Assembly: GCA_002269645.1 (NCBI GenBank)
Contig: NIVC01003149.1
Location: 52,431 to 116,430 of the forward strand
Direction of reading: 5' to 3'
From: Macrostomum lignano
Lineage: Eukaryota
DNA: 64,000 nucleotides
Part shown: positions 4,001 through 47,353 of the stretch, piece by piece
Position numbering within the stretch: position 1 is the first letter of the stretch
Layout of the letters: each line of letters begins with the position of its first letter
The notes under the pieces: model-generated
Told to the model about the DNA's origin: nothing
Database searches by the model: none
Seen by the model: the letters and a program-made list of their open reading frames with translations, nothing else
Program-made: the position numbers and the translations under genes

Positions 4001-5779
4001 GAGAGTTCTGGAGCCTAAGGTTAGTTACAATTTTATTTGAAATCACTTAACTTGTATTCTATTCACTTAGAACCAGTCAAAGTCATACCTCATAGTTCAA
4101 AATAGAACCGAAGCAACGTCATCGGTAATTCAGTACCGCTACTCATATTGACAACAGTAGTGTAGCCAGGGTCTTTCACTTTGGTTTTCGGCTTTAGAAC
4201 CAGGGGCTTTAGCACCAGGGGCTTTAGCACCAGGGGCTTTAGCACCAGGGGCTTTAGCACCAGGGGCTTTAGCACCCGCGGCTTTAGCACCAGGGGCTTT
4301 AGCACCAGGGGCTTTAGCACCAGCGGCTTTAGCACCAGGGGCTTTAGCACCAGGGGCTTTAGCACCAGGAGCTTTAGCACCAGGGGCTTTAGCACCAGGG
4401 GCTTTAGCACCAGGAGCTTTAGCACCAGTGGCTTTAGCACCAGCGGCTTTAGCACCAGGGGCTTTGGCACCAGCGGCTTTAGCACCAGGGGCTTTAGCAC
4501 CAGGGGCGTTAGCACCAGGGGCGCAGTCACCAACCAGACATTGTTTAACCGGTGCCCTTAGCCATGACGTACATTGTTACATGTACTAATCATACAATTT
4601 CACCTCCCACACCTTAGCTAAGTCTGTTCGCTGAGCCGCTGATGCTTGTCGAAGTGACAATTAGCGAGCGCGCGAATGTGCCCGGCTACACGCCAAGCCA
4701 GCCGGAGTCAACTCTGGCCGAGGTTGCGCCCAAACTGACTGAGGCAATCAATAAGAAAACTCTATACGTTCAGATTCTTGATGGCGAGATTATGTTTGAC
4801 ATACCTGTTAATGACTTTGTTCAGATGGATGCGAGAAGGTATTTATTCGCATCGTTATGAATTTTAATTAAGTATTCGACCGTATGCACTTGTGCACGCT
4901 ATATAACTTGTTCAAAAATGCTAATTTCAGGACTGAAAAAACGGAATCGCAAGGAGGACTGTCTCCAGGTAAAATCAATGTCTTGTGTGTTTTTGGAAAG
5001 CAAGAAAGTCTTCATCTTTAATATGGGGCACTGAGACGTTAGAAAAGCGCCGAGACCGACACCTATGCATGACACCGGGATAGACACTTGGGCACCAGGA
5101 TATTCATATAGCACAATCTGGATAGACACTTAGACATCAGGATGGACATATAGAACAACCAAAGAGACACTTGGACATAAGGACAGACACCTTGGACACC
5201 AAGGATAGACATATAAAACAATATGGATAGACACTTGGACACCATGATTGCCATATAAAACAATCTGGATAGACGCTTGGACATCAAGATAGACACTTTG
5301 GACACCGGGATAAAGACTTGGACACCCGGATAGACACTTGGAAACCAGGATAGACATATAAAACAAACAAGATAAACACTTGGACACCAGGATAGACACT
5401 TTGGACACCAGGATAAAGACGTGGACACTAGGATAGATACTTGGACACCGGGATAAAGACGTGGACACTAGGATAGATATTTGAACACCGGGATAAAGAC
5501 GTGGACACTAGGATAGAGACTTGGAAACCAGGATAGCCATATAAAACAACCAGGATAGAGAGAAGATGATGGCATATCAAAGAATGCTTCCGAAGAAGGA
5601 TCTTTAAACCAGCATTCTCAAACCAAACTCACGAAATCTAAGGAGCCGCAGCAGGTCTCAGCATTGGCATGCTCATACTCGGTGCACTGATCGCCCTGCT
5701 GGTGATCTTCGGTCTGAGTTACTTCCGCAACAACTCTGTGTTCGGCTTCAAGCCGTTTGGAAACGGCGCCGAAGGCTGA
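1070..5779 (+). CDS. Spliced type I membrane protein, 5' partial; ectodomain resembles the metazoan LolA-like/ependymin-related fold. Exons 1070-1309, 2096-2253, 2819-2929, 3025-3102, 3699-3825, 3895-4019, 4618-4838, 4931-4968, 5643-5779
   Basis: All eight introns are GT-AG and phase-compatible, giving one open frame: ...NDFSRGISYIKNMHYGNCSFDKIP...YKGSGIYRDTDVDVF...HDISDCF...ISPLRV...GGLSPGAAAGLSIGMLILGALIALLVIFGLSYFR...stop. The C-terminal TM helix is clear; the domain name is from recalled motif similarity only. Confidence 0.85.
2455..2650. repeat. Degenerate ~20-bp tandem repeat (GATTAGATAGTGGAAACC) in intron
   Basis: Repeated GATAGTGGAAAC/TATAGTGAAAAC units. Confidence 0.75.
4195..4520. 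repeat. 15-bp minisatellite (GGCTTTAGCACCAGG)n in intron
   Basis: About 21 near-perfect units; source of the STRGF/LKPLV ORFs. Confidence 0.97.
5075..5545. repeat. Degenerate ~20-21-bp minisatellite (GGACACCAGGATAGACACTT) in intron
   Basis: Repeated GGATAGACA/GGACACCAGG units. Confidence 0.9.
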
Positions 5780-6292
5780 GAGAGAATGTGCTTCGCTGGT
5801 GATTATTCGTTTAAACAAACCCGTTATAGCTATTATTCGTGTGAGCTCAGATGTTAAAAAATTAACTTTGATAAACAAAATCAACATGAGCCAGTTTTCG
5901 AAAAGTAATAAACATTTTTCAAACCGATAACATTCGCTAGACTTAATATTTCAACAATATCAATAAATTGATAAATATACTAGTATACTCGTTTCTGGCG
6001 TTTCTAGTTAACATAGAAATGTTTTGACAATTTCAACGCTTCACTTTGTTTATTGACTTGTATGGATCACAATACTAAACGTTTCCGACGTGAATTGACT
6101 TCGCTAAAAATGTGGGTAATTTTACTTTTCCTTTGAATAGGTGTTACACTTCTTTATGATACTGACCAATATACGAGCTAGAGTATCGGGGAGTATTTTC
6201 ATAAGACTGAAATTTTCACAGCGTCGAAAAAAGTATTGCTGATCACTTCCGCCGTCTCATACTGAGCCGATTTCGACGATATGACGTTACAA

Positions 6293-6830
6293 GCTGTGAT
6301 GTTTCGAGTCTGTGATGTTTCGAGCTTGTGATGTTTCGAGCTTGTGATGTTTCGAGTATGTGATGTGATGTTTAGAATCTGTGATGTTTCGAGCTTGTGA
6401 TGTTTCGAGTATGTGATGTGATGTTTAGAATCTGTGATGTGATGTTTCGAGTATGTGATGTGATGTTTAGAATCTGTGATGTGATGTTTCGAGTATGTGA
6501 TGTGATGCTTCGAGTTTGTGATGTGATGTTTCGAGTTGTGATGTTTCGAGTATGTGATGTGATGTTTAGAATCTGTGATGTGATGTTTCGAGTATGTGAT
6601 GTGATGCTTCGAGTTTGTGATGTGATGTTTCGAGTTGTGATGTTTCGAGTATGTGATGTGATGTTTAGAATCTGTGATGTGATGTTTCGAGTATGTGATG
6701 TGATGCTTCGAGTTTGTGATGTGATGTTTCGAGTTGTGATGTTTCGAGTCTGTGATGTGATGTTTAGAGCCTGTGATGTTTTGAGTCGGCGATGTAGACG
6801 TTTCAAGTGACGTGATGCTTTGAGCTTGTA
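6293..6830. repeat. Compound minisatellite (TGTGATGTGATGTTTCGAG) with a 99-bp higher-order unit
   Basis: Translated periodicity MFRVCDV-MFRICDV-MFRVCDV-MLRVCDV-MFRVV (33 codons) recurs. Confidence 0.93.
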
Positions 6831-12250: not shown

Positions 12251-14334
12251 TGATGTAACCGCCCTTGTCGCCTGTCCGCTCCGTTGAGAGACGAACGCGT
12301 GACCAGAGGGGGCAATGACCGTAGGCTGCCTATGACCGGGCAATGACCTGACGGACCTCCAGCACCAGACTGTCCCGCCCACATGATTGATAGCTTTGGT
12401 AGCGCTTCGTGACCAGAGGGCCAAGGACCCACATGGACCCCACCTGTAGCCAAGGTGCAATAGTTAGTCACTCGGTCATGGTATGACCGAGTGGCTGCCA
12501 CCACTCTATGTGACCTGGCGCATCTGGATCTTACTACCAGACCTCTCGAGGCTACAGCCCCGCCTGGGATGATTACCAGGGGATTTAGGCTAACAGGGGA
12601 GACACATGCAGCCGAGTACAGGGACTCTGCTTGAGGCATGATCGGGAACTCTGGGCTCAATCTGGAGGATTTCTCAGCAAGGGATTCTTTGTGGCTGTGA
12701 GCGAGGCTGACTTGCGACTTTGATTACTAAGAGTAGTGTGAGGCGAACATGTACTGTCTCTAGTTTAGATTGCTCAGGGCGAAGGGACACGTCAGCATGG
12801 GATTGCAACCTTCCTACTGCCATTCTGTGCCAAGACTCGCTAATTCCTTCTACTGCACGCACACACGGCCCCGCGGCACGCACTCACAGGCGAGCTTTGC
12901 ACGGGGAGAATCCATTAGTTTACCCAAACTTCCCTATGCTTTGCCTACCCGGGAGAAAGGCTTAGCAAGCCATGAGTGAAATGATGGTGAAAGAGTGAAT
13001 AATGATGAGGTTAGTTAATAGTTAATATTTAGGCCCTTAGGCAAATAATCAGGCAATTAGGCGGCTTCACTATTGAGTAAAAGTACAGCAAAAGATACGG
13101 TATCACAATTGGCTCAGCTCTCGAATCAAGCAATGGCGAAGTAGGCAAACCCCGGATAAGCAAAGGCAATTAGAGCACAAATTAGTAACAGGAACTTACC
13201 GGCAGCTGCACAGAGAGAGAGCGAGAGAGAGCGATGGAGTGACCGGGGGCGGCTGTAGGCTGCAGTCAGGCAGACAGTGAAGCGGCGATGCGCTGAGGTG
13301 ACGAGGCGCTGATGTAGATCAGGCGATGCTGATGATGCTGGGCGGTATCAGACCGCTGGCCGATAGGCGAGCTCACTTGGGGAGCTAAGATAACTTGGCG
13401 GTAACAGACCGCGGACCGGCAGAGGTTCGTCCTATAGACGAATGGGTCAGAGCTACGTCTGACAGCGAGTCCACAGTAGGACGAGAAGGAACGCGTAACC
13501 TCGCAGTTCTGAGGATTCTCATGCCGAAAACCGCTTCCTTATAAAGCTTTCCCAGCCACCGCTCCAAGGTCGTTTCCATGAATCCCTCTCTCTGATTGGC
13601 TGCCGGCAGAATGACGTCAGAATGAGTCATGATGAGAAGCATGAGAACGGCATAGTAATACGAGAAATGGGAGAATTGCGCAATCCGGAGGTGGGGTGGG
13701 GGGGATAATTGGCGCAGCGGGAGGTCGCGAAAGTGAAAAGGTGATAATTAGGTGCGAAAACGAGAACAAAAGAAAGAGAAAATCGGAGAAAATGTGATAA
13801 TTGGTGGGGATAAAGAGAACAAAAGAATCAAAAACGAGAACAATAGAAGCGGAGGTGGGGTGGGTGTCGCATGAGAAATTTGGGGTGGAGAACAATGGCA
13901 TGAGAAAATGTTGCGCAAGAGAGGGGGATGAGTCATCGATGAGTCATCGAGGGGAAGAAGGGGTCACACGACTTGCTTCACCGTTTGGTAGTTTGAGAAG
14001 GGATGGTGGCACAGTGAGCGCGCAAAATACTGTAAGTAGACGCAGGAAAAGGGGGGATAGCGCAGGAAAATAGTGCGAAAAAGGGCAAAAAGAAGGGAGA
14101 CAGGGGAGGTACAGAGAGAATAGGGTGGAGCGCAGAGTAGATAGGGTAGAGGGGGAGGTACAGAGAGGGGTAGGGAGCTCCGGAAAGGCAAGTGTGTCGG
14201 CAGGGGAGACGGAGCCAAGGCAGCAGGGGGTGCAGCAGAGCGGGAGTCTGCAGGTCTGGTCGAAGACCTGGCCCAGTCTCGACAGCTCCGTGCAGAAGGT
14301 ACACGGCGATGGGAGGCACTTTTGAAAGAAGTTC
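12251..14334 (-). mobile_element. Solo-LTR-like element, copy A; one end truncated; inverted relative to 51597-53808
   Basis: Starts TGATGTAACCGCCCTTGTCG and aligns by eye with the reverse complement of 51597-53808; homology stops at about GAAAGAAGTTC (14334). Confidence 0.85.
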
Positions 14335-15534
14335 TGTGAAATTGCATGAAGAATATCGAAAGTCAAAACAATTTAGCAAACTGATTCACTATGCAAAAGA
14401 CACCGTTTGGCAATGCGGATATTGTCATAGGTGAGGTTGATCACCTATGAAAATATAAATACTACTCATATATATAGTACTCTTATGTATATACTCAGCA
14501 ACATTGAAAAGTCGCCACTCTATGCGCCAGTGAGCAATTTCTCTTGGACTATTCTGAAATAAAAGATGCAAGAAAACTGTTCGGGGTAGCTTTAATCCGC
14601 CCAACCCTCGCACACCGCTCCCCCCACTTCATTCCTCAACTCAAGTCTGACCCGGCGTAGCTGAGTTGCGTCACTCGCAAAGAGTCACTCGGTTCTATTG
14701 TTCACTTTTTTAGACGTGACCGATGAGCAAAATTGAGCGAATGAATATTGGATGAAATAAAAATTTGCGTAGGAGAACGAGGAGGTAGCAAATATTGTAG
14801 AATCTTAAAACATAAAAGCAAAAAAACAAAACCTTTTCCCTATAGCCCAATGTCTTCAAACTTGTAGAGAAACTCCCAAACTTCTTGTCTATCTCTGGCC
14901 ACTACCATTTCAAAACCTTGACTCTAAAATCTGCACTAAGAAGAGTGAAATGATTTTATGCAGATTTTATGATATTATGATATTATGCAGAGAAGTCAAA
15001 CTTGCTAACGATAGAGAAGGTTTAAAAAGCAACCAAAGCAAGAAATGAAGACGAAAGTTTTTTTTTTCCGAAACTTCTAAACATTGCAGCTATCAGTTTG
15101 CTGTGCCTACATTAAAAAAAAGTTAGTTTCAGAAAAAACTTTTTGCTTGCAATTCCAGGGCAACAAAAGTCAATAATAATCCTTTTTCACCTTGCTAAAG
15201 GCTAAAAAGAACAGTATCAGTTTGAAGATTTACTTCAGTTTTCTTCAAAAAAGAATTGAGTCTTAAGGTGAGGATCTCAGCTAGGAGAGAAGTGTGATAA
15301 GTCTAGATAACTCCAATCGAGATGTCAGTATGAGCAGTTTGTCAAAGTCTTATTCACGAATGGTTAACAGCTGGTTAGCGATAAAACAGACACAGCCCCC
15401 TTCCAAACACCTCTCGCCAACTGTCAGAGTTGAAAATCTCCGGAGCATAAAATGCGAAGAATTCAAGATTAGTTTACCATTATTTTGACAGGAAGAAATC
15501 GTCCGAAATCTTAAAATAGCGAACAGATTCTAGC

Positions 15535-16697
15535 ATGGAATTAAAACTTAGAGTAATTGCAGCACTTCTGCTCGTGATCGGCTGTTGTGCAACTCTGATG
15601 ACGTGTAGCTGCCAGAATGACCCGCATTCTAGCTACTCTTTCAAGGAAATCGTTGGCACGACCACTATAAAAGGCTTGAAGCTGCGGGTATTCGAGTTGG
15701 GAAGAGGCGTTCAAGTGGCCGAACCGAGAGTCAAGCTCGGTGGGTCTTGCAGCACCCTCAGGTATAACCGTCTTTACCTGAAGTATCAGTTGTCTGTACC
15801 GTTTCAAGTGAAAACTCCTGTTCTAAAGAGTACCATGGGCCGCGGAAAAAAAATTGGTCGAGTCATCGTTTCTCAGGTTGACGTCAAGTTGAACGCGGCA
15901 CTCGCGAGTAAGAGTTCGAAGCTGACTGTGATTACAACCAGCAAGCGTGGCAGCTGGAAACTTTTGTTCCTTTGCGACACTTACCAGAGGTGCTCAGGAC
16001 TGCGAGATGAACTCGTGAGCAATCCGTGGTCTCTTCAGCAGGCAGTGCAATTTAACCTGATCGGAGAGGTAGCTAGCTCTGCGGTGATGTTCGAAGCGCA
16101 AGCAAGTTTGACTCCATTGAATCTCAAGGACTGCTACAGAGGCCGATGGTTTGTCATTCAGCGACAGGTTAATGGCGATTTGTCATTCAAGAAAAATTGG
16201 GACGACTACGTCAAGGGATTCGGACATCCAAAGTCCAATTTTTGGATCGGTGTGTACTCTTAGAATAATCTAAAACTATAACAGCTGCTTTATCAAGGCT
16301 AGCTGATTCTGCAAAGTTTTAAAATCGCTTACCATGCTTCCATACTGCAGGACTGGAGAGTCTTTTCGCCATCACTGCGACCAAAGAAACCGATGTTACT
16401 TGGCGCAATCCCGAGACTACACTTTGTCGACTGAGAATTGAAGCCGAAGGTTTGGACAAGAAGAAGTACTGGGGTGAATATGGCCGATTCCAGGTCTTGA
16501 GCGCCGACCAGAACTACCGACTTCGAGTGGGCGATAAGAAAGCGGGCTCAACTATTGACGGTTTCATCAGGGTGCACAATGAGCAGCAATTTAGCACCTA
16601 CGACAGGGATCACGATACAAATCCAAAAATGTCTTGCTCTCGAGTGTTTGGCTTTGGCGGATTTTGGTTTGGCAGCGGCTTAAGAGTGAACCCCAAC
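15535..16697 (+). CDS. Secreted fibrinogen C-terminal domain (FReD) protein, copy 1, 3' truncated; exons 15535-16249 and 16351-~16697
   Basis: Signal peptide MELKLRVIAALLLVIGCCA; WFVIQRQVNGDLSFKKNWDDYVKGFG...FWIG|LESL...YRLRVG...FSTYDRDHD...GGFWF. Similarity to copy 2 ends at NPN, and the FWFGSC Cys is Gly here. Confidence 0.88.
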
Positions 16698-16776: not shown

Positions 16777-17520
16777 CAGGGGCGTCGCCACCGGGGGGAC
16801 AGGAGACATGTTCCCCTCCCCCATTACGAACTTAAAGCTATATTCTGGGACTTGCCAATGCTTTGTCCCCCCCCCTCCCTACCTTTTTTGACTTGCTATG
16901 GAAATCTAAATGTTTTGCTTATTATAACTAAAGATGGTGCCTGCGGCGCTAAAATGAGTGCCTGCGGCGCTAAAATGAGTGCCAGCGGCGCTAAAGTGAG
17001 TGCCTGCGGCGCTAAAATGAGTGCCTGCGGCGCTAAAGTGAGTGCCTGCGGCGCTAAAGTGAGTGCCTGCGGCGCTAAAGTGAGTGCCTGCGGCGCTAAA
17101 GTGAGTGCCTGCGGCGCTACAATGAGTGAATGTGGCACTAAAATGAGTGAATGTGGCGCTAAAATGAGTGCATGTGGCGCTAAAATGAGTGAATGTGGCG
17201 CTAAAATGAGTGAATGTGGCGCTAAAATGAGTGAATGTGGCGCTAAAATGAGTGCATGTGGCGCTAAAATGAGTGAATGTGGCGCTAAAATGAGTGAATG
17301 TCGCGCTAAAATGAGTGCCAGCGGCGCTAAAATGAGTGCCTGCGGCGCTAAAATGAGTGCCTGCGGCGCTAAAATGAGTACCTGCGGCGCCAAAATAATT
17401 AAATGATCGCGGACAACACCGATTCTGAAAATAATTTACTAGCAGAAATTGTCATGTACACATGTACATGCAACATTCTTGGCTTTGTTCCCCCTCCATA
17501 AAATCCATGGCGACGCCCTG
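16777..17520. mobile_element. MITE-like element with CAGGGGCGTCGCCA/TGGCGACGCCCTG termini and a long internal 21-bp array (~16935-17395)
   Basis: Terminal inverted repeats seen directly; about 22 units of GCCTGCGGCGCTAAAATGAGT and variants. Confidence 0.85.
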
Positions 17521-28800: not shown

Positions 28801-29684
28801 GCGGTGCGGCCTTTGTTCGCGCCCAAGCTTCGAAGCGCGCCATCTGACGCTGCTTTTGCGAACTAACAGCGTACTCAGTTGTTTTTGTTGTTGTTGTCAA
28901 AGTGAAGACGTTATACAATTGCAAATAAAGTCGGCAGTTTGTTTGCCTTAACAGTATTTTTTTAAAATTTACGAGCGTAACGTCCACCTGGAAAGAAAAA
29001 CGACCAATGTCCAGCTAAAGCACGCACAGAAGTTAGTTTCCAATGAAAAAGCAGTTTGCTCAACAAAACTCGGGGGCGGCAGCGGGCCTCTTGTCATTAT
29101 GAAGGATATAGAAGGCTTAGAAATCCGCAAGAATGAGGCGCATCAAGAAGCAAAGCCGAGGAGTTGTAAGCGAGGCGGGGCCAGAGTAGAGTATAAGCAT
29201 ATACAAAAATATGAAGCGAATAGGTAAGAAAAGTGCCCAAAATGGAAGGCAACAGAACGAGAGAAGACAATAGCAGCCACCGACCATTCCAGACAGAAGA
29301 CAGGAGCGAGGCGGCGAGTTGAGCGAACCAGTCGAGCTGACCGTCGAGACAAAAGGAGTAATGAACGCAGCGCGTGCACAATCCAGGATCTGAAGGAGGA
29401 GAGAAGCTGCGGGCGCATCTGAAAAAAAATACTCAATGACTGCACTCGCTTATTCTTAAAACTCAACGAAAGCAAAAACCCTAGCTAATCTACCCTCACC
29501 TCCGTAGAAGGATACAGGCGTAATGGATAAAACCCGGATAAACTGCCGCATTAAACTGTTTATATAAACTCCTGTCGTGGCAAGCCATGCGGAAGCCAAC
29601 TGTAAAAAGCTCAAAAAAGTAGTTTACCATTATTTTGACAGGAAGAAATCGTCCGAAATCTTAAAATAGCGAACAGATTCTAGC

Positions 29685-30960
29685 ATGGAATTAAAACTTA
29701 GAGTAATTGCAGCACTTCTGCTCGTGATCGGCTGTTGTGCAACTCTGATGACGTGTAGCTGCCAGAATGACCCGCATTCTAGCTACTCTTTCAAGGAAAT
29801 CGTTGGCACGACCACTATAAAAGGCTTGAAGCTGCGGGTATTCGAGTTGGGAAGAGGCGTTCAAGTGGCCGAACCGAGAGTCAAGCTCGGTGGGTCTTGC
29901 AGCACCCTCAGGTATAACCGTCTTTACCTGAAGTATCAGTTGTCTGTACCGTTTCAAGTGAAAACTCCTGTTCTAAAGAGTACCATGGGCCGCGGAAAAA
30001 AATTGGTCGAGTCATCGTTTCTCAGGTTGACGTCAAGTTGAACGCGGCACTCGCGAGTAAGAGTTCGAAGCTGACTGTGATTACAACCAGCAAGCGTGGC
30101 AGCTGGAAACTTTTGTTCCTATGCGACACTTACGAGAGGTGCTCAGGACTGCGAGATGAACTCGTGAGCAATCCGTGGTCTCTTCAGCAGGCAGTGCAAT
30201 TTAACCTGATCGGAGAGGTAGCTAGCTCTGCGGTGATGTTCGAAGCGCAAGCAAGTTTGACTCCATTGAATCTCAAGGACTGCTACAGAGGCCGATGGTT
30301 TGTCATTCAGCGACAGGTTAATGGCGATTTGTCATTCAAGAAAAATTGGGACGACTACGTCAAGGGATTCGAACATCCAAAGTCCAATTTTTGGATCGGT
30401 GTGTACTCTTAGAATAATCTAAGACTATAACAGCTGCTTTATCAAGGCTAGCTGATTCTGCACAGTTTTAAAATCGCTTACCATGCTTCCATACTGCAGG
30501 ACTGGAGAGTCTTTTCGCCATCACTGCGACCAAAGAAACCGATGTTACTTGGCGCAATCCCGAGACTACACTTTGTCGACTGAGAATTGAAGCCGAAGGT
30601 TTGGACAAGAAGAAGTACTGGGGTGAATATGGCCGATTCCAGGTCTTGAGCGCCGACCAGAACTACCGACTTCGAGTGGGCGATAAGAAAGCGGGCTCAA
30701 CTATTGACGGTTTCGTCAGGATGCACAATGAGCAGCAATTTAGCACCTACGACAGGGATCACGATACAAATCCAAAAATGTCTTGCTCTCGAGTGTTTGG
30801 CTTTGGCGGATTTTGGTTTGGCAGCTGCTTAAGAGTGAACCCCAACGGAGTGGTAACGAAGAGGAACACCAATGCGCCGTTCACATACCAATCCGTTTTT
30901 GTTACAGGCAATAAGTGGCCTCAGACTAAGGCGATTGTAATGAAGTTAAAGTGCGAATAA
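29685..30960 (+). CDS. Secreted FReD protein, copy 2; complete 3' end but a 1-bp deletion in an A-run; exons 29685-30398 and 30500-30960
   Basis: Near-identical to copy 1; A7 (29996-30002) versus A8 in copy 1; ends FWFGSCLRVNPNGVV...AIVMKLKCE stop. Confidence 0.88.
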
Positions 30961-33382: not shown

Positions 33383-36300
33383 TGTTGTGTATAAGTGCAT
33401 GATATTCGAAAATGTTATTTTATGTCTATGGACATTAACACTGTTCAGTTCAGCTCTGAGCAAAGAAGAGCCAAGGTCCGCTCGTTCTGAAGCAGTACGT
33501 TCTGGTGACAAAAAGATAAATTGCACTGAGCTGACAAAAGGCACAGAGGCTGACGATTTTGCTCAAACGCTATCCATCGGAATTGCAGCTAGCAGCAGTC
33601 TTTTGTGGCACAAGGACTTTCAGATCGGCTATCTTAGAGCAAGAATGTGTATCGACACGGGCAGCCAAATCACAGCTTTACCAAAGGATCTAGCCATCAA
33701 AACCGGTTTCGAAATTCAGAAAGATTCCACATTAGCTTTGAAGGTTTACGGTGGCCTGAGTACAACCGCGTTAGGCGTACTGAGAAATGCGACCGTCACG
33801 GACAGCAGCGGTAACAGCGCCGTTGGCGATATCCTAGTCGGACAGCCCGGCACACAGTGCATTCTGGGAATGAACTTCATCAAAGCATTTTCTCTCATCC
33901 CGGAGATCGATCTGAAGTGCAGTCCAGTTACCTGCAACAATTCTGATGAGTTTACCGCTAGCTTTCGACTTAAAAACAACGCCTCATTCGAAGGAATGTG
34001 TTACCGTGCTCGTTCTCTGCCATTTTCCATGAAAGTTATGGTGGAGGCCGAATTGAGCAGACTGCTTTCTGCTGGTATAATCTACCCTGTGGAAAACCCT
34101 ACCGTTTCGTGTCCAATAGTACCCGTTCTCAAGCCCGAAGGGTCGGCCAGACCCATCCGAATCTGTGGAGATTACTCGGTGACGCTGAACAGGCTCATCG
34201 ATCCTGATCAGTACAAACTTCCTAAGCTTGAGGAGATTCTAGCAGCTATTCCAAATGCAAAGCACTATTCTGTGATCGATTTAGAAGACGCGTACTTGCA
34301 GATTGGATTATCGGAGGACAGCCAACGATTGACTTGTATTTCCACTCATGTGGGCCATTTTGCATTCCGAAAGATGCAGTTCGGAATATCCGCCGCTCCG
34401 TTAATATTTCAAGAGGTGATGGATAAACTGCTGAGAGGTATACCATACGTAGCTTCTTACCAAGATGACATCGTAATCGGGACTCCAAGCGCTAGTGAGC
34501 ATCACAGAGTTCTTTCACTGGTAAAGGGCAGACTTGCTCAACATGGGTTTAAAATTAATGTCCACAAGTCTCAGGAGTTCAAGGATCGCGTCAAGTTCTT
34601 GGGCTTCGTACTCACTAATGGTCAACTGCAACCAGATCCTGCAAGGGTCAAGGCACTAAATGAGTTGGCAGAACCAAGAGACAAAGATCAACTAAGGAGT
34701 GCGGTGTCTACCTTGCGTCACTACGGATTGTTCTGCCCGAATTTCTCACTCATCGCAAAACCACTTTACCATCTTCTAAAAAAGCATGTACCATGGAATT
34801 GGACCGACCTTCACACAGATGCTTATCAGAAGTTAAAGTCCAGTATACCTCAAGGCAAAATCGTATCTTATGACATCACCCAACCTCTGTTTTTGACGTG
34901 CGATGCCTCTAAAGACGGAATTGGTTATGTGCTTTCCCACGATGAAAATCAGCAGCAAGTCGTCTGGCTCGCAAGCCGAATACTAACATCCGCTGAGTCG
35001 AATTACTCGAATATCGAACGCGAAGCACTTGCCATTGTCGAAGGTGTTAAATATTATCACCAGTTCCTAGCAGGTCGACACTTTAAGATAATTTCCGATC
35101 ATCGCCCACTAATGTTTATTTTCAATCCTGGCAAGATCTCAGAGCGCGTATCAGCCAGATTGCAGCGCTGGGCATTGACTTTGAGCGCCTACAACTACCA
35201 AGTCATCTATTCAAAGGGGGAGACAATGTTTGCAGCTGATACCTTGTCGAGAATCCCAAGTACTGGAAAATGTCCTATCGTAAATTCAGTGAATCTACTG
35301 GAGATAAACAACCTCGAAGAATTCAGAAATTCCGAAGAACTTCTCAAACGTATTCCCCATTCAAAAGATTCTGAAATAGTTCTGCTGAAAAAGTTCATAA
35401 CACAAGGCTGGCCAGAATACCCTCCCAAACACATGCTTCCATACAGCAAGGATCGATCCGAGTACACAATACAGAACGGAATTGTCTTCAGAGGCATTCG
35501 GATTGTACCACCATCTCAACTGAGGCGCGAAATCCTGCACCTGCTTCATGAAGGACATCCAGGAATCGTGAGGATGATCCGAGTTGCGCGCCAATATTTC
35601 TGGTGGCCTTCAATCGACCTGAGCATCAACAGTTTTGTCCAGAGGTGCCCGATTTGCCAGCTAAACGCCAGGAAAAAGCCCAATGCAAATCTGGCTAGCT
35701 GGTCTGATGCTGAAGAGTTTTTCGAGCGCGTTCACCTGGACATCGCTTTCTACAAGGACTACAAGTTCCTGGTGCTGGTTGACGCTTTTTCGCGCTGGAT
35801 CGACATTCAGACACTTGGATCCATCACGTCTTCTTCGGTTATCAGTGTGTGTCGAAAGACTTTCAAATACGTTGGGTTGCCCAAGTTTCTGGTGACCGAC
35901 AACGGGACCAACTTTCGATCTGAGGAGTTTCAATCATTTCTGAAATCAAACAAAATTCAACAAATCCTCACGCCACCTGGGCACCACCAGTCCAACGGTC
36001 TCGTTGAGCGCATTATTCAAGTTTTTAAGATGGCTCTCAAGTGTTCATCTGGTGAAGTCGATGTGGAACACTCAGTTGCTTCTTTCTGCTTAAGACAAAA
36101 CACCACACCTTCTTCAATCGGTGCGATTCCTGCCAGTCAAGTTTTTATAAAAATTCCACGTACCCGTCTATCAGCTACGTGCACAGAACTGCATCAGCCA
36201 GCGGAAGACTCTTCCAAACCAGTCTACATCCGCATCGAGACTAAATCTAGCAAGGCTGGGGAGAAGATCACTTCCAAGTTCGGTTCAAATACATCTACTG

Positions 36301-36809
36301 ATAGCCGAAACAGAATGGTGCATCAATCTGACATCAATGCGAGGACGGCCACGGCGGATGAGGAACCACCGGTTCAAACTACCCCGGAGTCTGATGAGTC
36401 TCCTGTTCCTTCCTCCGGTGCGTCAGTACCAATCGTACCCGATTTGCCAAATTCTCATGCAACAGCCAATCCACGGGTTTTTCGACGGAGTACTCGTCTA
36501 CGCAAAACACCCGACAGACTGACTTACTACTGACTGCTACAAGCGTATCTTATGAACAGATTGACCCAGTAAAACTAACTTCATTGTTTGGAATCTTTGG
36601 TCGGGGTGTTGTGTATAAGTGCATGATATTCGAAAATGTTATTTTATGTCTATGGACATTAACACTGTTCAGTTCAGCTCTGAGCAAAGAAGAGCCAAGG
36701 TCCGCGCGTTATTATGGATCAAGAAAAATACACGCGCCTGCATGCCGCATCTTTTTAGCAGCTCCTGCGTTATTAAGTCTCGGTCACTCGAAATGCTAAA
36801 CTTATAACA
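33383..36809 (+). mobile_element. Gypsy (Mag/K02A2.6-like) LTR retrotransposon, gag-deleted; 5' LTR remnant 33383-33481, 3' LTR 36607-36809, TSD GCCCC
   Basis: TGTT...AACA ends; GCCCC at 33378-33382 and 36810-36814; first 99 bp of both LTRs identical; short purine-rich tract before the 3' LTR. Confidence 0.95.
33399..36533 (+). CDS. pol: Uninterrupted Pol polyprotein (protease, RT, RNase H, integrase) whose frame opens inside the 5' LTR
   Basis: IDTGS; RICGDY, DLEDAYLQI, QFGISAAP, YQDD; CDASKDGIG, EREALA, SDHRPL; HEGHPG...CPIC, HLD, TDNG, SNGLVER. First ATG is at 33399. Confidence 0.95.
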   Translation: MIFENVILCLWTLTLFSSALSKEEPRSARSEAVRSGDKKINCTELTKGTEADDFAQTLSIGIAASSSLLWHKDFQIGYLRARMCIDTGSQITALPKDLAIKTGFEIQKDSTLALKVYGGLSTTALGVLRNATVTDSSGNSAVGDILVGQPGTQCILGMNFIKAFSLIPEIDLKCSPVTCNNSDEFTASFRLKNNASFEGMCYRARSLPFSMKVMVEAELSRLLSAGIIYPVENPTVSCPIVPVLKPEGSARPIRICGDYSVTLNRLIDPDQYKLPKLEEILAAIPNAKHYSVIDLEDAYLQIGLSEDSQRLTCISTHVGHFAFRKMQFGISAAPLIFQEVMDKLLRGIPYVASYQDDIVIGTPSASEHHRVLSLVKGRLAQHGFKINVHKSQEFKDRVKFLGFVLTNGQLQPDPARVKALNELAEPRDKDQLRSAVSTLRHYGLFCPNFSLIAKPLYHLLKKHVPWNWTDLHTDAYQKLKSSIPQGKIVSYDITQPLFLTCDASKDGIGYVLSHDENQQQVVWLASRILTSAESNYSNIEREALAIVEGVKYYHQFLAGRHFKIISDHRPLMFIFNPGKISERVSARLQRWALTLSAYNYQVIYSKGETMFAADTLSRIPSTGKCPIVNSVNLLEINNLEEFRNSEELLKRIPHSKDSEIVLLKKFITQGWPEYPPKHMLPYSKDRSEYTIQNGIVFRGIRIVPPSQLRREILHLLHEGHPGIVRMIRVARQYFWWPSIDLSINSFVQRCPICQLNARKKPNANLASWSDAEEFFERVHLDIAFYKDYKFLVLVDAFSRWIDIQTLGSITSSSVISVCRKTFKYVGLPKFLVTDNGTNFRSEEFQSFLKSNKIQQILTPPGHHQSNGLVERIIQVFKMALKCSSGEVDVEHSVASFCLRQNTTPSSIGAIPASQVFIKIPRTRLSATCTELHQPAEDSSKPVYIRIETKSSKAGEKITSKFGSNTSTDSRNRMVHQSDINARTATADEEPPVQTTPESDESPVPSSGASVPIVPDLPNSHATANPRVFRRSTRLRKTPDRLTYY

Positions 36810-37899
36810 GCCCCTTTTTTGGGCCATGGACAATGAAAGGTAAGTCTTCAATAGCTTGATTCTCCCAATATGGATTAAATTGGCTTGGAAAATGTTTTAT
36901 CTGCGGTGGTGGGTTATTTCTTTAAAGAACTGCATAGGAAAAATTTTTAAGTTTGTTACTGCCGTTTTTAGTATATTGAATCATCAAAGGGGAACGTACA
37001 TGTAGATTTTTTTAGAATGGCGTAGTAAATGTGAATGTACATGTACGAACGTATAGATATGTAAGCATTATAACAGAAATTAAAGTCTTTAGAAGTATTC
37101 CGCAACTAACCATCACGTCGATACAAGTACTTGTACGAGTAAAGATTAGAATTATCTCTTTCCTATGCTCCGTGTGATTTACAAGTTAGAATTGATAACG
37201 CTCATTCTTTTACACAGTCTTCGGTACATGTATTTATTATACGATGCCTCTGGGACACAATTAGCAGAAAATTGTCATTTCTCGTTCATTTAATTCGGCC
37301 ATGGGCATTCCATTAGACGGCCACTTAGCTCAGTTTCCTGTGCAAGTTTCTATGCCAAAGATATGATCTGTCATCATTTGCGTTCCCGTGGTCTATTTAT
37401 CTTTTTTCCTATGTTACGATAATCCTGTTCCTTCATAGATTGACACAAAGATCAATTTTATTGCCAGCGTGAAACGCAATAACCGAAATCTTGTAATATG
37501 GGCACCATATTTGGTAAATCTTCTGGGTAAATCACTCGTATTAGGTAAAACAGTCGATCAAACATTTTATACATTGGGACTTCCTCATCGCATGATCCCG
37601 CACAGGGATGCAATCATAAAAATATTACCAAAGCAAAAATTTATTGCGCTATTGTTTTCAATGTCTACCCAAACTAGCTCTCGTAAAGCCAAATTAAGGC
37701 ACGTTTACAGTTACTAAATTACTATTCATTGCACATTCGTCAAACGAACATATGCGTAGGAATGGGGGAAAGTGAGACCATGCGTCCTCCCCACACTTTG
37801 CCAACAATGGTAACTGGCCCTTCCATAGTTTAAATGCAAAATGTTGACTTTTTTCTCATGTTTTACTCTTATTTCTGGTTTTTGCTGCTTTGCAGGAAT

Positions 37900-38160
37900 G
37901 CATTTTTCTGCAGGACGACAGAACATAGTGCCTGCGGCGCCAAAATGAGTGCCTGCGGCTCTAAAATGAGTGCCTGCGGCGCCAAAATGAGTACCTGTGG
38001 CGCTAAAATGAGTACCTGCGGCACCAAAATGAGGGCTGACACCGATTCTGAAAATAATCGGTACGTACATGATAATGTGCATTTCCTATATAAAAATAAA
38101 TAAATCTAACTCGACGGGGGTGTGCGCCCTGTGCGTCCCCCCTTCCTAAATCCGCCACTG
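37900..38160. mobile_element. MITE-family relative with ~6 units of the 21-bp repeat
   Basis: GCCTGCGGCGCCAAAATGAGT units, ACACCGATTCTGAAAATAAT motif, terminal AAATCCGCCACTG. Confidence 0.7.
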
Positions 38161-38802
38161 AACCTAGCCCTCAGTTTTTGAAACGTTCCTACGCATATGC
38201 AAACGAATAATGTACGGATCAACTACTAATATGTACTCGTTAAAATCGAACTGTCAAAAACAATGAACTGCAAGCAAGGAGTCAAGCGATTCAAGCAGAA
38301 ATACTTGCATAATTTATGGCGTAGTTAATAAGCAAAAAGTTGAACAGCTCATATAATATTATTTCGTATTTTGCATGAAAGGCATGTATGCGTTGCAGTT
38401 AATACATGTAACAGTAAACGCTTTCTGCTGAGCTAGGATCGAGTTTTAAACTGACCCTACCGGGATCTTTCACTGGTTGGATTCGATGGCCAAGAGATGT
38501 CTAATTAGAAACGATCAGTGGGAAATATTAGCGAAGCAAAACTATAGTACGATATTGCAGTCAAACGTGTTATCCTAGGATTGGTCACATCACAAGCTCC
38601 AAAATCGTTATCAGGTGAATCAGAAGACAGCTAGACAATCTTGTCCAATGAGTACAAGAGGTTCTGATTGGACTGCAGCAAAGTATAAAAAGAAAATGCT
38701 AGGTTAAAACAAAACGTTTTCTATGCTAATATAGAAGTGAGAAAAGCTAATTTTGTGAAATAACAAGCTAATTTCGTGTCTCTTCTGTGATTTTTCTCAA
38801 CA

Positions 38803-41346
38803 ATGTTCGTCTTCTTCCCTCTGGAATCGAAGCCCTACCGCTATAGCCGAATGCTGTCAATTTTAATCTGTTTCGGATTCGTCATCGGAATGGTGAACAA
38901 CGTTGAATCATTTCGTCTTTTCGATGATGCGCTGAACATCGCGGATAAGAGAATTGTCACTGGGGGTGAGGGTAAGTATATTTGATCAAAGTTTTTCATC
39001 GATTAAAAAACTACAAAGACCAGAAATATTGTAAATGTTTAAGTTGGAACACGAAAATATGCTTCAAAATTCGGCTGATTTCAATCAATTTTGCCAAAAA
39101 AGCGACCTAGTTTGCCCATAGCAAAGAAAACACCACAGACATACATAGCAAGATCAAAGAATGGCCCAGCGTGGACCTTATAACAGGATTTCAGCGAAGG
39201 ACCGGCAGCGATTGATTCAAAGCATATCAGGATGGAGAGGACTGGCAAGATTTCGGTAGGCTGTTGGGCATCTCACGAAGAACCGTGACTTACATATAGT
39301 TGGACAATTCAACGCAACCGGTCGTATAGAGTCTCTGCCTCGCGGAGGTGCCAAGCGGAGGTCCCTTAACAATGCTATGATTGAGAGCATTTGTGCCTAC
39401 GTCTCCATTATAAACTCGCTGTTTATTGTTCACTGTTACAGTTTATTTCGTCACACTTCCGAAATGATTCTCAATAAAAATTCTTCTTGGCTTGCTATGG
39501 GCAAACTAGGTCGCAGTTTTGGCAAAATTGATTGCAGTTTTCAAAGAGTTCTCTGTGGCTGAAACTCTGGTCATGACTGAGCAGACTTGGCCTAGACAGC
39601 AAAATTATAAGTGATATTTTTCCGCAGGCAAAATTGATTGCAGTTTTGGCACACTACGACTCGTATAGATCGCAAAAAGGTATAGTACAATAGCACATCT
39701 TATCTTATTTCGCATCTCTTGTCTCCCGACTCCTCTCGATCTCATCTGGCCAGGTAAAAAAGTTTTTATTACTGCACTGCGCCCTGCTTCCCGAACAAGA
39801 CGCAGACTCTTCGAAACCTACTTTTTTAAAAAGCATAGCTAATTGCAGTTGAACTAAGTACATGGACATTAAAGATTCCGTTTTCTTATAGAATGATAGA
39901 ACCCTATATAGGCATTTCCAGTAAACAGCACCACGCAAAAATTGCGAACTACTTGTTGTTGTTGTTAAAACTCTTTAAACCTCTTGACTCAGGGACTCCT
40001 TTAACGACGTCTGGGCAAACCAGTCTTGAAAAAACACTGAAAGACGTGTCTGAAAGGCAATAAAATTTTGCTGGATCTATCAATCAAGCAAGTATCGATA
40101 GTTTCAAGTTGATATCCTATATTATCTTGCTAGGCACGCTCAAAGAATCAAATCCTGCAGGCTTAAAAGCTGAGGTAATGCACGATAGCATGATACTCGG
40201 AATCGCCTTTTTGTGTTACACTTACACGACTTTTAATACTTCTGTCACGTGCTGGGAAGGACTTTCGTTTGCTTACACACCATATACCCTCTTTGAAGGA
40301 TATAATATTTCAATATTTCGACTGGAGCCATCAGATCATTGAAGCTCATGAGTTGCCTAAAAGAAACTGCTCGTAAATGTTGAGGTTGAAGCGCCACTTT
40401 TTCAGAGTCACACAAATTTTGAAATTATACTCGTGTTTGGAATAGCTACTTTTCATAATATTCAGTAGGCAATAGTAAGCATAAAAATTAAACTTTATTG
40501 AGACGAGCTGTAGCCAATCGGAGAATTTAATTTATTGAAGTATTTGCTATGGATCATGGGTTGGCAAACTCCGGCCCGATCCGGCCCTCGGGTCTTTTGA
40601 AACTTCAATATGATAGCAATCTGGCCCGATCAATGTTTATATCTCTTGTCAGCGCTCTTCTTTCTAATGTACTCTCTTCCTCTCTCCTCTCTTGTCTTCT
40701 CTATTATCTCTCTCATCTACTCTCTTCTCTTCTCTATTATCTCTTTCATCTCCTCTCTCCTCTCTTCTCTTTTCTTTTATCTCTCTCCTCTCTCCTCTCC
40801 TCTCGTCTCGTCTTCTGTCTCCCCTCTCCTCATCTCCTGTCTCCTCTTTTCTCTCTCATTTCTCTTATCCTCTCCTCTCTCTTATTCTCTCTACTCCTCT
40901 CTTCTCCTTTATTTTAATGCCTTTCCCGTCTCTTATCTCCCTTCTCTCTTTTTCATTCCCTCTCTTCTCTTCCCTCCTACGGCCCGCGGTCAATCTCTAT
41001 GTTCTCTATCAGGCCATTAAGGTAAAATAGTCTGCCGACCACTGCTACAGATGCATGATGGCCTACATGTATGTACGTGTAAATAGCATAAAAGTCTATC
41101 ATTAAATTAACTCTTAAATAATCATTATTGTCTCAACGTTTCTCAATGTTACACTGAAGTATCTCAAACAATTGCCTACTTATCCGTGTTCCACCCGCAG
41201 ATCCACTTCGATCGGCTCGTCTAAACGCAATTTGCTCAAACTTGTGCCGAAAAATATTCCGAACGGGTGGTGCATTCTGCAGCGGTCTGTTTACTGTTGC
41301 CTTGGGCTACCCGGACTGCGTTTGCAATCAAAGCTGTCAGGCTTAA
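38803..41346 (+). CDS. Candidate secreted 6-cysteine defensin-like (CS-alpha-beta-type) prepropeptide; exons 38803-38971 and 41201-41346
   Basis: Exon 1: (M...)MLSILICFGFVIGMVNNVESFRLFDDALNIADKRIVTGGE G|gtaagt. Exon 2: cccgcag|AT, PLRSARLNAICSNLCRKIFRTGGAFCSGLFTVALGYPDCVCNQSCQA stop. Phases match. Confidence 0.7.
39082..39684 (+). mobile_element. Second HTH-only Tc1/IS630-like derivative, related to 27369-28079
   Basis: From 39161: MAQRGPYNRISAKDRQRLI..AYQDGEDWQDFGRLLGISRRTV..GRIESLPRGGAKRRSLNNAMIESI (frameshifted). Inverted repeats 39082-39124 and 39492-39534; shared terminus AAAAAGGTATA. Confidence 0.8.
40650..40980. repeat. CT-rich low-complexity tract; related segment at ~60230-60400
   Basis: (CTCT/CTT)n; both tracts are preceded by CCGGCCCTCGGGTC. 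Confidence 0.8.
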
Positions 41347-42830: not shown

Positions 42831-42959
42831 AATAAAATGATTTGTGTACTATCTAATAAGCGGATTATTGCGCTGGAATAAAAAGAGATTATTACGCTAG
42901 CTGAGACATGGATTATTGCACAACCTCAGAAAGCGATTATTGCATTAGCAGAGGAAATA

Positions 42960-43600
42960 TTTGCACTAGCTACTTCCTGTCTGGTGGATGCATGCTATCT
43001 GTGGGATACTTTGCTATTGTATCTGGGGGGGGGGGTGCTTACTATTGGGGGATGCTTGCTCTCGAGGGGGAAGGGGTACTGACTCTTTGGGAAAGGGGGG
43101 TACTAGCTATACATGTATCTACATGTATGGGATTCTTCGTATACAGGGATGCTTGTTATTTAGGGATTCTTGTTATCTGCAGGATTCTTGCTATCTGGAT
43201 GATGCTTGCTATCTGCAGCATGCTTGCTATCTGGGTGGATGCTTGCTATCTGCAGCATGCTTGCTATCTGGGTGGATGCTTGCTATCTGCAGGATGCTTG
43301 CTATTTGGGGGGATGCTTACTATCTTGGCGGATGCTTGCTATCTGCAGAATGCTTCCTATCTGCAGAATGCTTGCTATCTGGGGGAGGGGGGATGCTTAC
43401 TATCTTTGAGGATGCTTGCTATCTGGGTGGATTCTTGCTATCTGCAGGATGCTGCTATCTGGGGGATGCTTACTATCTTGGAGGATGATTGCTATCTGCG
43501 TGGAGGCTTGCTATCTGGGGGATGCTTGCTGTATTGGAGGATGATTGCTATCTGCGTGGAGGCTTGCTATCTGGGGGAATGCGTGCTGTCTTGGGGATGC
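42960..43600. repeat. Degenerate minisatellite (GATGCTTGCTATCTG...)
   Basis: Recurrent TGCTTGCTATCTG; source of the DACYL/CLLS ORFs. Confidence 0.9.
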
Positions 43601-44382
43601 TTTCTATTTAGGGGGAATGTCTGTGTGTTTGTGAAATTTAGGGGGAATTTAGGGGGAATCTTTGTGAAAATCATATTTTGTTGTCTTTCTGTTAATTTAA
43701 AAAAAGAGATTCATAGCAAGCATCTTTGTCCGTGACAATTTTACTCGAAAAAGGTGATTTATAAAACTGAAGAAGGAATTGGTTCTTAAGAAAATGTGCT
43801 TTTTTATTTGTTTTATATTGCTCCTTGCTTATTGCGCGGCCCCGAAGGGGGGCACTAGATTGCTAGTAATAATCTATAATCTATTTATATTTTCTAACAC
43901 ATACTGTACTTCGTTTTATTGGTACATTATTTTGTCAAGTTGTATACGCCTAGAGATAAAATTGCCTGGACTGATTTTCATTTACAATCATCTGCTTGCT
44001 ACTTTTATCACCAAGGAGTCCGGAAAATGATCTTCAGTCGGCTTTTTGGTTATGATTTATGCTCGTACGATCGTCTGGTTGTCACTTCTGGCGACGGATG
44101 TCTTGCGTAGGCAGTTTTGGCAAACATTTTTGCCTGTTTTACTAATTCGCTAGCACCAACCCGTGCAAACCGGCTCCACCAAACCAAACTCTCTCGAAGT
44201 CGGGTTCCCAACTATAGGTACACTGAACTAACCTGCCGACTACATGTAGTGTCGTTTAGCTGTCAACTTCGGATTTGGCATTTCCTTCAAGCTGAGTTGG
44301 AGCAAAAGGTAACCGTTCACTGTTGATTTTGAACTTTCAGCACATAAAGAAGAGAATTTACAAGCAGTCTCAGCGGCCGATT

Positions 44383-46350: not shown

Positions 46351-47040
46351 TTAAATAGTAAAAAGAATACTGAATACTGAAAGCTAGCCTACTAAGAGTA
46401 AGAGAACAGAATGGAACTCAGCTGCGATTCTAAGATTGAAAGAATGTGCGTTCTGATCATACGCTTAGAGACTAGGAGTTATGATATGGGCTCACTATCA
46501 AGAAAATAAAGAAATGCCTTCAATTAAGTGCATCTTCACTAGTTCTGCGTTTTAATCTTCAGCATTTAATCTCTTAAGCGACTCTCACGTAACAGTTAAT
46601 CGATAATTATTTTCAAATCAGCAGACTGGAAGTTAATCGAAACAGTCATGATTGAGATGTTTAAAATGCTAGTGTCTGATAGTCTCTGGAGCTTCTAGTT
46701 GGCATGCCAACAGCACTAACTTTTTTAAAACACCAACTGCTGGTTGTTATAAAACACTGTACGAACCCAGGACGCCTGCTAGTGCTATTAATCACAGAAA
46801 TCAAATTCACGAGAGTGGAGAAGTTAAATCTTTGCGAATTCATTTTTACCCTTAATAACTAAAAAAAACACAAAAACGCAAAGCTACACCACCATTTGTA
46901 CTTTCTGTCTGACTATTAAAGCTAGTATCGAGTTGACGGATAAGCGTTTATCTGAAAGCTAATACGCTCGTATACTTGAGGGATCTACAGGAGCATCGTG
47001 CAGAGATTTAATTGGACACCCATGCAGTCCCAATCCCAAA

Positions 47041-47353
47041 CAGGCGCGTCGCCACCGAGGGACGTCCCCCCTGTAAAGCTCTGGGGGACATGCCAATGCT
47101 TTGTCCCCCCACCCCACCTTGTGAGTCGTGATGTAATCAGTAATTTTTCTTCAGGGCGCCAAAACAGCACCTTCGGCGCCAAAATGATTGCCTTCGGCGC
47201 CAAAATGAGTGCCTGTGGCGCTAAAAGGAATGTCTGCGGCGCCAAAAGGAGTGCCTGGGGCGCTAAAAGGAGTGCCAAAATTTAGTCATGTACATGTAAT
47301 ATTAAATTCTTAGCTTTGTCCCCCCCAACATAAAATTCATGGCGACGCCCCTG
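47041..47353. mobile_element. MITE-family copy with ~6 units of the 21-bp repeat
   Basis: CAGGCGCGTCGCCA...TGGCGACGCCCCTG termini. Confidence 0.85.

Follow-up and report, generated by a model that had tools for sequence, protein, structure and literature searches.

A 64,000-nucleotide stretch of the genome of the free-living flatworm Macrostomum lignano (contig NIVC01003149.1 of assembly GCA_002269645.1, positions 52,431 to 116,430; called the window here, with positions counted from its first letter) carries on its forward strand, between 38803 and 41346, a two-exon gene for a secreted peptide with six cysteines. On homology, cysteine spacing, prepropeptide layout, and intron position, the gene product belongs with one paralog to an M. 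lignano six-cysteine family, represented in UniProt by A0A1I8G4C8 for the window gene and A0A1I8HB23 for the paralog. These proteins form a real M. lignano peptide family that, judged from predicted structures, looks like a new cysteine variant of the cysteine-stabilized alpha-beta (CS-alpha-beta), or cis-defensin, scaffold, in a phylum that was reported to be without it. We estimate the probability that this is a real gene for a secreted CS-alpha-beta-like peptide to be about 60%.

Gene structure, precursor, and paralog

The coding part of exon 1 (38803-38971, + strand, 169 nt) extends from the first ATG to a GTAAGT donor, ends in phase 1, and specifies an N-terminal extension, the signal peptide, the propeptide, and the start of the mature peptide. 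It is followed by a phase-1 intron of 2229 nt (38972-41200, GTAAGT...CAG) that closes with a pyrimidine-rich tract and acceptor, ...tccacccgCAG (41180-41200, with the CAG at 41198-41200). The coding part of exon 2 (41201-41346, 146 nt) yields (D)PLRSARLNAICSNLCRKIFRTGGAFCSGLFTVALGYPDCVCNQSCQA and the stop codon TAA (41344-41346), and the Asp codon is split G|AT across the phase-1 junction. Start codons are available at ATG 38803 and at a second in-frame ATG, 38851. The spliced translation of both exons is MFVFFPLESKPYRYSRMLSILICFGFVIGMVNNVESFRLFDDALNIADKRIVTGGEDPLRSARLNAICSNLCRKIFRTGGAFCSGLFTVALGYPDCVCNQSCQA, in which the cysteine domain C-x3-C-x10-C-x12-C-x-C-x3-C (41233-41337) is predicted to form a helix carrying CxxxC and then a beta-hairpin with CxC on its second strand. 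An initial annotation, made from the letters of the window, had proposed this two-exon prepropeptide, and its exons, phase, splice signals, and joined product were all reproduced exactly; a recount of the cysteines in the joined product also returned its spacing of 3,10,12,1,3. We hold with high confidence that the gene is real and has this exon structure.

Counted from the second ATG, the signal peptide MLSILICFGFVIGMVNNVES (38851-38910) reads as a hydrophobic core with V/S at -3/-1, and it can be aligned with the signal peptide of the paralog. The acidic propeptide FRLFDDALNIADKR (38911-38952) ends in the dibasic pair KR (38947-38952), which the paralog keeps as KRR. The signal and acidic pro-piece ending in KR had been given in the same form by the initial annotation, and the paralog adds conservation of both the signal peptide and the dibasic site. 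The precursor would enter the secretory pathway, where removal of the signal peptide would be followed by cleavage C-terminal to KR by an enzyme of the furin or prohormone-convertase type, so that the mature peptide would have approximately 52-54 residues and six cysteines. Because KR followed by IVTGGE resembles the activation site of a serine protease, a trypsin gene was also considered; it was rejected, as a six-frame scan identified no AAHC, GDSGG, or WPWQ exons downstream.

An exhaustive phmmer (HMMER) search of 1.84 billion representative proteins returned one true relative, the paralog A0A1I8HB23 (94 amino acids, E = 2e-7; also PAA48380.1, PAA79169.1, and PAA86856.1, with locus tags that include BOX15_Mlig008453g1 and Mlig002236g1). 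It is 38-41% identical to the window product, retains all 6 cysteines with the identical spacing 3,10,12,1,3, and has the motifs LN..C..LCR..F and G[HY]PDCVC in common with it, so that a homolog with the conserved cysteine pattern does exist. Its precursor likewise begins with a signal peptide, followed by the short propeptide SQTTAKRR. Three contigs of GCA_002269645.1 carry the paralog gene, which consists of two exons; its junction (GAAGCGG|gtatgt...caacag|AC) is in phase 1, in the same Asp codon, ahead of the cysteine domain. The initial annotation had allowed for a small middle exon in the window gene. Since the paralog intron interrupts the same Asp codon in the same phase, and since the UniProt model of the window gene joins the same exons, such an exon is now very unlikely.

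Compared to the window product, the paralog has a short propeptide, a His-rich tail ending in PGR, a net charge of 0, and an intron of 225 nt rather than 2229 nt. The tail, RHSVLHWLHLDGHQEPGR, comprises the 18 C-terminal residues, has an amidation-type Gly-Arg end, is absent from the window peptide, and was modelled at low confidence by AlphaFold2. Among the three genomic copies of the paralog, 11 differences occur over 1.1 kb, all of them outside the exons (about 2.9 expected within them); as a sign of purifying selection, this signal was too weak to count.

Other searches added no members to the family. No further paralogs were found within the window by tblastn, and no relatives in bacterial or archaeal genomes, viral contigs, or Joint Genome Institute metagenomes; a profile search of a 5.8-billion protein set also returned no further relatives. 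Matches to a Diploptera repeat protein and a metagenomic repeat protein were rejected as chance or repeat-inflated, for they covered only a cysteine-free 'VTGDP..ARLN' segment occurring in 6-7 repeats. By sequence, M. lignano has at least two diverged paralog lineages, with no relatives detectable elsewhere in the available databases.

The window gene had been called hidden by the initial annotation. For UniProt this was not so: entry A0A1I8G4C8 (also in UniRef100; M. lignano, 92 amino acids), automatically named 'Kazal-like domain-containing protein', is 98% identical to the window product and is built from the same two exons. For GenBank the description held, in that no counterpart of the window gene among the Mlig_3_7 proteins (accessions PAA..., locus tags BOX15_...) was present in the databases searched, and the gene appears to be missing from that annotation. 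Exon 1 of A0A1I8G4C8 ends at 38965, 6 nt 5' of the GTAAGT donor, at an alternative donor in the same phase (GTGAGG, 38966-38971, + strand), and the model therefore lacks the residues GE (IVTG-DPL instead of IVTGGE-DPL). M. lignano introns use the donor motif GT[G/A]AG and the acceptor motif CAG (PMC8629364). The window acceptor matches this CAG; both donors fit the species motif, and GTAAGT is closer to the general consensus. The distance from KR to the first cysteine is 18 with the GTAAGT donor, 16 with GTGAGG, and 17 in the paralog, and does not discriminate between the donors.

A0A1I8G4C8 is N-terminally partial. Its first residue corresponds to codon P11 (38833), directly 3' of an AG at 38831-38832 (+ strand) that follows a pyrimidine-rich stretch and is a candidate acceptor for spliced-leader trans-splicing. 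The spliced leader of M. lignano has 35 nt and ends, at its 3' end, in ATG (PMC8629364). Spliced-leader addition at 38831-38832 would yield the in-frame product MPYRYSRMLSIL..., which would begin with a textbook signal peptide; however, this AG departs from the usual [T/C]TNCAG trans-splice motif. The mature product is identical for either start site.

Upstream of the gene, TATAAAA (38683-38690, + strand), approximately 115 nt 5' of the first ATG, is a weak candidate for a core promoter. The motif GTATAAAAA occurs at this place in the window (38680-38692) and also in a paralog contig (L002, 5866-5880), about 125 nt 5' of the ATG, and in a pairwise comparison the remaining upstream DNA of the two paralogs did not align outside this TATA-like motif. 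The motif may represent a TATA-type promoter common to both paralogs.

Cysteine array and predicted fold

Tarr defined a reference array of cysteines, C1-C10, for CS-alpha-beta peptides (Tarr 2016, PMC5116183). In this array the flatworm peptides keep C3, C4, C6, C8, C9, and C10 and are missing C1 and C2. Six-cysteine defensins of the insect or invertebrate type possess C2, C3, C4, C6, C8, and C9, with the cysteine of the N-terminal loop bonded to that of the first strand; neither flatworm paralog has a cysteine between KR and the helix CxxxC. The eight-cysteine class of plant defensins and drosomycin is matched in the C-terminal C-x-C-x3-C, and the flatworm peptides have six cysteines only and no first strand. 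The spacing in Rs-AFP1 (sequence checked against 1AYJ) is 10,5,3,10,8,1,3, so that its last 6 cysteines are spaced 3,10,8,1,3. The flatworm spacing of 3,10,12,1,3 is thus shared with the last 6 positions of the eight-cysteine plant array, the one difference being a longer hairpin loop. The initial annotation was correct that the window peptide has an additional C-terminal cysteine and none ahead of the helix; its description of the spacing as unusual did not survive this comparison, as a pattern found in plant defensins such as Rs-AFP1, apart from the loop, is not exotic. The arrangement looks like a truncated array of the plant-defensin or drosomycin type, which may have lost C1 and C2 together with the N-terminal strand.

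In plant defensins the disulfides connect C1-C8, C2-C5, C3-C6, and C4-C7. The absent C1 and C2 are the partners of 2 retained cysteines, and those two must consequently pair with each other or bond differently. The CS-alpha-beta scaffold is characterised by two parallel disulfides, Ci-Cj and Ci+4-Cj+2, that anchor the helix on the final strand. We suggest that Cys1-Cys4 and Cys2-Cys5 would bridge the helix CxxxC to the CxC of the last strand, and that Cys3-Cys6 would form a third, non-canonical bond from the first strand to the cysteine three residues past CxC. There is a precedent in nematode ASABF-6Cys-alpha, in which cysteines were lost other than as a bonded pair and the bonding was rearranged (PMC5116183). 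Like the flatworm peptides, ASABF-6Cys-alpha is a six-cysteine CS-alpha-beta form whose missing cysteines are not a bonded pair; unlike them, it keeps C3-C6, C8, and C9 rather than C3, C4, C6, C8, C9, and C10, and it has no detectable sequence similarity to them.

AlphaFold2 predicted the same core for both paralogs: a helix at residues 2-19 and strands at 27-33 and 36-42 for the window exon-2 peptide (mean predicted local distance difference test score, pLDDT, 80), and a helix at 2-17 with strands at 27-32 and 35-40 for the paralog (mean pLDDT 79). In these predictions CxxxC lies inside the helix (CSNLC in the window peptide, CTRLC in the paralog), and the CxC, CVC in both, lies on the second strand of the hairpin that follows. 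The helix plus beta-hairpin expected from the initial annotation was therefore predicted twice, at a pLDDT of about 80. Foldseek comparison of the window model with the PDB placed the plant defensin AtD90 first (probability 0.87, template modelling score 0.62, root-mean-square deviation 0.8 A over 34 columns), with an E-value of 0.89, the usual size for such tiny folds. Rs-AFP1 was also in the list, together with the allergen Blo t 19, which we take to be ASABF-related.

Sequence comparisons pointed the same way. A search of PDB sequences with the window peptide returned CS-alpha-beta proteins only, namely the fungal defensin eurocin, at E = 0.4-0.98, and BjxtrIT, a scorpion toxin, at E = 0.25. 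Both could be aligned over the helix CxxxC and the next cysteine, and eurocin also over the CxC. By hhalign, a profile of the two paralogs aligned to eurocin, micasin, MGD-1, Cg-Def, and an arthropod defensin with a probability of 68%, 5 cysteines in register, and P = 4.7e-5, a value that is optimistic because this defensin set was picked after the eurocin match. Against Rs-AFP1/2, all 6 cysteines were in register at a probability of 3.5%. The weak sequence and fold matches of the window peptide in which the cysteines fall in register are all to CS-alpha-beta proteins.

Two groups of known defensins resemble the flatworm peptides most. Eurocin (2LT8), micasin, MGD-1, and Cg-Def likewise have CxxxC, about 10 residues, a cysteine, and a hairpin ending in CxC, and eurocin has CS..CR, GG.[FY]C.G, and LG[HY]P.C.C in common with the flatworm peptides. 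MGD-1 has four disulfides, the extra one being C21-C38. In contrast to these ancient-invertebrate-type and fungal defensins, the flatworm peptide is without the GFGC N-terminal loop and its cysteine (the partner of the first-strand cysteine), its helix is much longer (about 18 residues), its hairpin loop is longer, and its C-terminal cysteine lies three past CxC. The plant defensins Rs-AFP1 (1AYJ) and AtD90 (7JN6), of the Gamma-thionin family PF00304, have the terminal C-x-C-x3-C and, in AtD90, provide the best Foldseek match; unlike them, the flatworm peptide has no first beta-strand and lacks the first two cysteines, so that the partners C5 and C8 must re-pair, and its host is an animal.

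Several results count against a secreted peptide of the CS-alpha-beta type. The canonical N-terminal cysteine of CS-alpha-beta defensins is missing. Both AlphaFold2 runs were built on an alignment of two different sequences, and the fold match of the window model was not replicated with the paralog model (with its 18-residue tail), whose Foldseek top 50 contained no defensin. None of the PDB sequence matches (E-values 0.25-0.98) was significant, the paralog mature peptide had zero matches in the same search, and Pfam returned nothing at E<=10, including PF01097, PF00304, and PF00537. Net charge is low (+2 or +3 in the window peptide, 0 in the paralog), in contrast to many cationic antimicrobial peptides. 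No expression data for the paralog locus tags were found in a full-text literature search or in M. lignano transcriptome supplements, and the missing Mlig_3_7 counterpart of the window gene belongs on this side as well. The likeness to defensins could be convergent. Taken together, the predicted fold and the cysteine-register matches, all to CS-alpha-beta proteins, give partial support to the CS-alpha-beta reading of the initial annotation, whereas no match to a known defensin is significant; on the models, we regard a CS-alpha-beta-like fold as probable.

Repeats and transposons in the window

The window is animal genomic DNA with open reading frames (ORFs) of long terminal repeat (LTR) retrotransposons and with tandem arrays. 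Two tracts lie in the intron of the gene. The first, at 39082-39534, is a DNA-transposon remnant of 453 bp with 43-nt terminal inverted repeats that are 95% complementary, and it includes a Tc1/mariner-like helix-turn-helix ORF fragment, MAQRGPYNRISAKDRQRLIQSI... (family assigned by eye). The second, at 40640-40990, consists of about 350 nt of CT-rich low-complexity DNA and degenerate tandem repeats (repeat families D1-D3). The transposon remnant and the CT-rich DNA account for an intron ten times as long as that of the paralog. An extra copy of a motif like the terminal inverted repeat, GCAAAATTGATTGCAGTTTTGGCA, is present at 39627-39651.

Upstream of the gene by 2.3 kb is an LTR-retrotransposon pol ORF (33387-36533, + strand), an uninterrupted 1048 amino acids with protease, reverse transcriptase, RNase H, and integrase motifs. 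A short ORF at 36584-36799, just downstream and probably within a repeat of the element, contains roughly the first 35 residues of this pol ORF again. A direct duplication (15470-16697 and 29620-30846, 14.15 kb apart) is 99.3% identical over 1228 bp and carries ORFs like the fibrinogen-related domain, for example NWDDYVKGFEHPKSNFWIGV at 29685-30960. The pair could have arisen by recent segmental duplication or tandem gene duplication, or else represent a region of this polyploid genome that was assembled twice. An inverted pair of approximately 2.1 kb (12251-14334 and 53808-51634) is 90-92% identical and presumably represents two copies of a dispersed repeat. Short-unit tandem arrays at 37726-38103 and 46985-47285, 9 kb apart, translate as GAAGTHF and AKMSACG repeats. 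Other tandem arrays are located at 4190-4522, 5078-5561, 6278-6824, 16928-17411, and 42908-43735.

Role of the peptide and meaning for flatworms

The most likely role for the peptide would be that of a secreted host-defence (antimicrobial) effector. By analogy with the defensins that it resembles, an antimicrobial role is possible, but we consider it doubtful.

The peptide could instead be secreted to act in signalling or reproduction, either as a ligand resembling neuropeptides or hormones or as a protein of glands or seminal fluid, on a small disulfide-stabilised scaffold. On this view the key feature is the prohormone-type processing, suggested by the signal peptide and dibasic site conserved in both paralogs. 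The near-neutral charge would suit such a role, as would the ...EPGR end of the paralog, a Gly-basic C-terminus being a typical amidation signal. Folds of the cis-defensin type serve signalling peptides in other kingdoms too, among them the plant LUREs and SCR/SP11. Lineage-restricted, fast divergence is common in Macrostomum reproductive proteins, and the present family is of that kind, its paralogs being 38% identical and without relatives elsewhere. Reproduction-related genes have been reported to evolve rapidly (PMC7336406). However, neither Pfam nor the HMMER protein search gave similarity to a known neuropeptide or hormone family, the amidation-like end is not conserved (the window peptide ends in ...SCQA), and no localisation of expression was found in the literature search or the M. 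lignano transcriptome supplements. A signalling or reproductive peptide is an unlikely explanation.

The CS-alpha-beta scaffold is common to defensins and channel toxins, and a toxin-like effector on ion channels of prey, predators, or competitors, comparable to the scorpion CS-alpha-beta toxins, was also weighed. The best PDB sequence match of the window peptide was indeed the scorpion excitatory insect toxin BjxtrIT (E = 0.25), with LN..C.N[IL]C.K[IV][FY]....G.[FY]C in common; that match, however, is non-significant, and its alignment ends short of the CxC strand. M. lignano feeds on diatoms and is not known to possess a venom apparatus or to envenomate other animals. Toxin-like CS-alpha-beta expressed sequence tags from a trematode have been discussed (Tarr 2016, PMC5116183). 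Nothing else speaks for a toxin, and we judge it quite improbable.

The surroundings of the gene raise the question of an unexpressed or decaying copy, for which the ab initio prediction would still look intact. The DNA is rich in transposons, with the pol ORF 2.3 kb upstream, and the intron has grown to 2.2 kb, versus 225 nt in the paralog, with the transposon remnant and low-complexity DNA. The sole database model is N-terminally partial, is found in UniRef alone, and has no Mlig_3_7 GenBank counterpart, and the exact product of A0A1I8G4C8 is on no recorded contig. Against this, there is no damage to the ORF, to either splice site, to the dibasic site, or to any of the 6 cysteines. At 38% identity the two paralogs still conserve all structural residues, which points to both lineages having long been under constraint, and the UniProt model starts at the AG boundary, as would be expected from a transcript with a trimmed spliced leader. 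An unexpressed or decaying copy seems a very slim prospect.

Kazal domains place the hairpin before the helix. A Kazal-type serine protease inhibitor domain, the reading offered by the UniRef names of A0A1I8G4C8 and A0A1I8HB23 and by a loose by-eye likeness of C-[SG]-G...G-[YH]-P-D-C-x-C to the Kazal core C-G-x-D-G-x-T-Y-x-N-x-C-x-x-C, was rejected and retains a negligible chance of being right: the spacing in OMTKY3 is 7,7,10,2,17 as opposed to 3,10,12,1,3; Pfam Kazal_1 and Kazal_2 gave no match at E<=10; hhalign of the two-paralog profile with three ovomucoid domains reached a probability of 0.25% over 11 columns with no cysteine register; AlphaFold2 placed the helix before the hairpin in both paralogs; and the Foldseek top 50 of either model held no Kazal protein. 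The UniProt label 'Kazal-like domain-containing protein' thus appears to be wrong for both paralogs.

Using BLAST and hidden Markov models on 33 flatworm species, both M. lignano assemblies among them, Irvine et al. concluded that flatworms encode no CS-alpha-beta peptides, an absence that they considered surprising (Irvine et al. 2023, PMC10414684). In S5 File of that study, the paralog is listed as BOX15_Mlig008453g2 in flatworm antimicrobial-peptide-like peptide (fAMP-LP) group 118; it was flagged there by 54.5% of antimicrobial peptide predictors and set aside untested as 'Peptide >60AAs' (PMC10414684). The window gene was not among the S5 File entries considered here. The initial annotation went too far in suggesting an undescribed family, given that the window protein is in UniProt and that the paralog stands in that supplement as antimicrobial-peptide-like group 118.

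We offer tentatively, and at somewhat less than even odds, the proposal that the two Macrostomum paralogs are the first genuine cis-defensin peptides of Platyhelminthes, with a new disulfide architecture in which the N-terminal strand and two cysteines were lost and the orphaned first-strand and C-terminal cysteines are paired. If the fold prediction fails, the product would be an ordinary lineage-specific small secreted protein. If the CS-alpha-beta fold is true, the family would be a counter-example to the reported absence from flatworms, one that was overlooked by homology searches; it would extend the known cysteine arrangements of defensins by a new one and provide a candidate innate-immune effector for a genetically tractable flatworm model. 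Were the proposal as a whole correct, flatworm defensins would have diverged beyond the reach of homology searches rather than having been lost at the base of the flatworms, or else the scaffold would have arisen independently.

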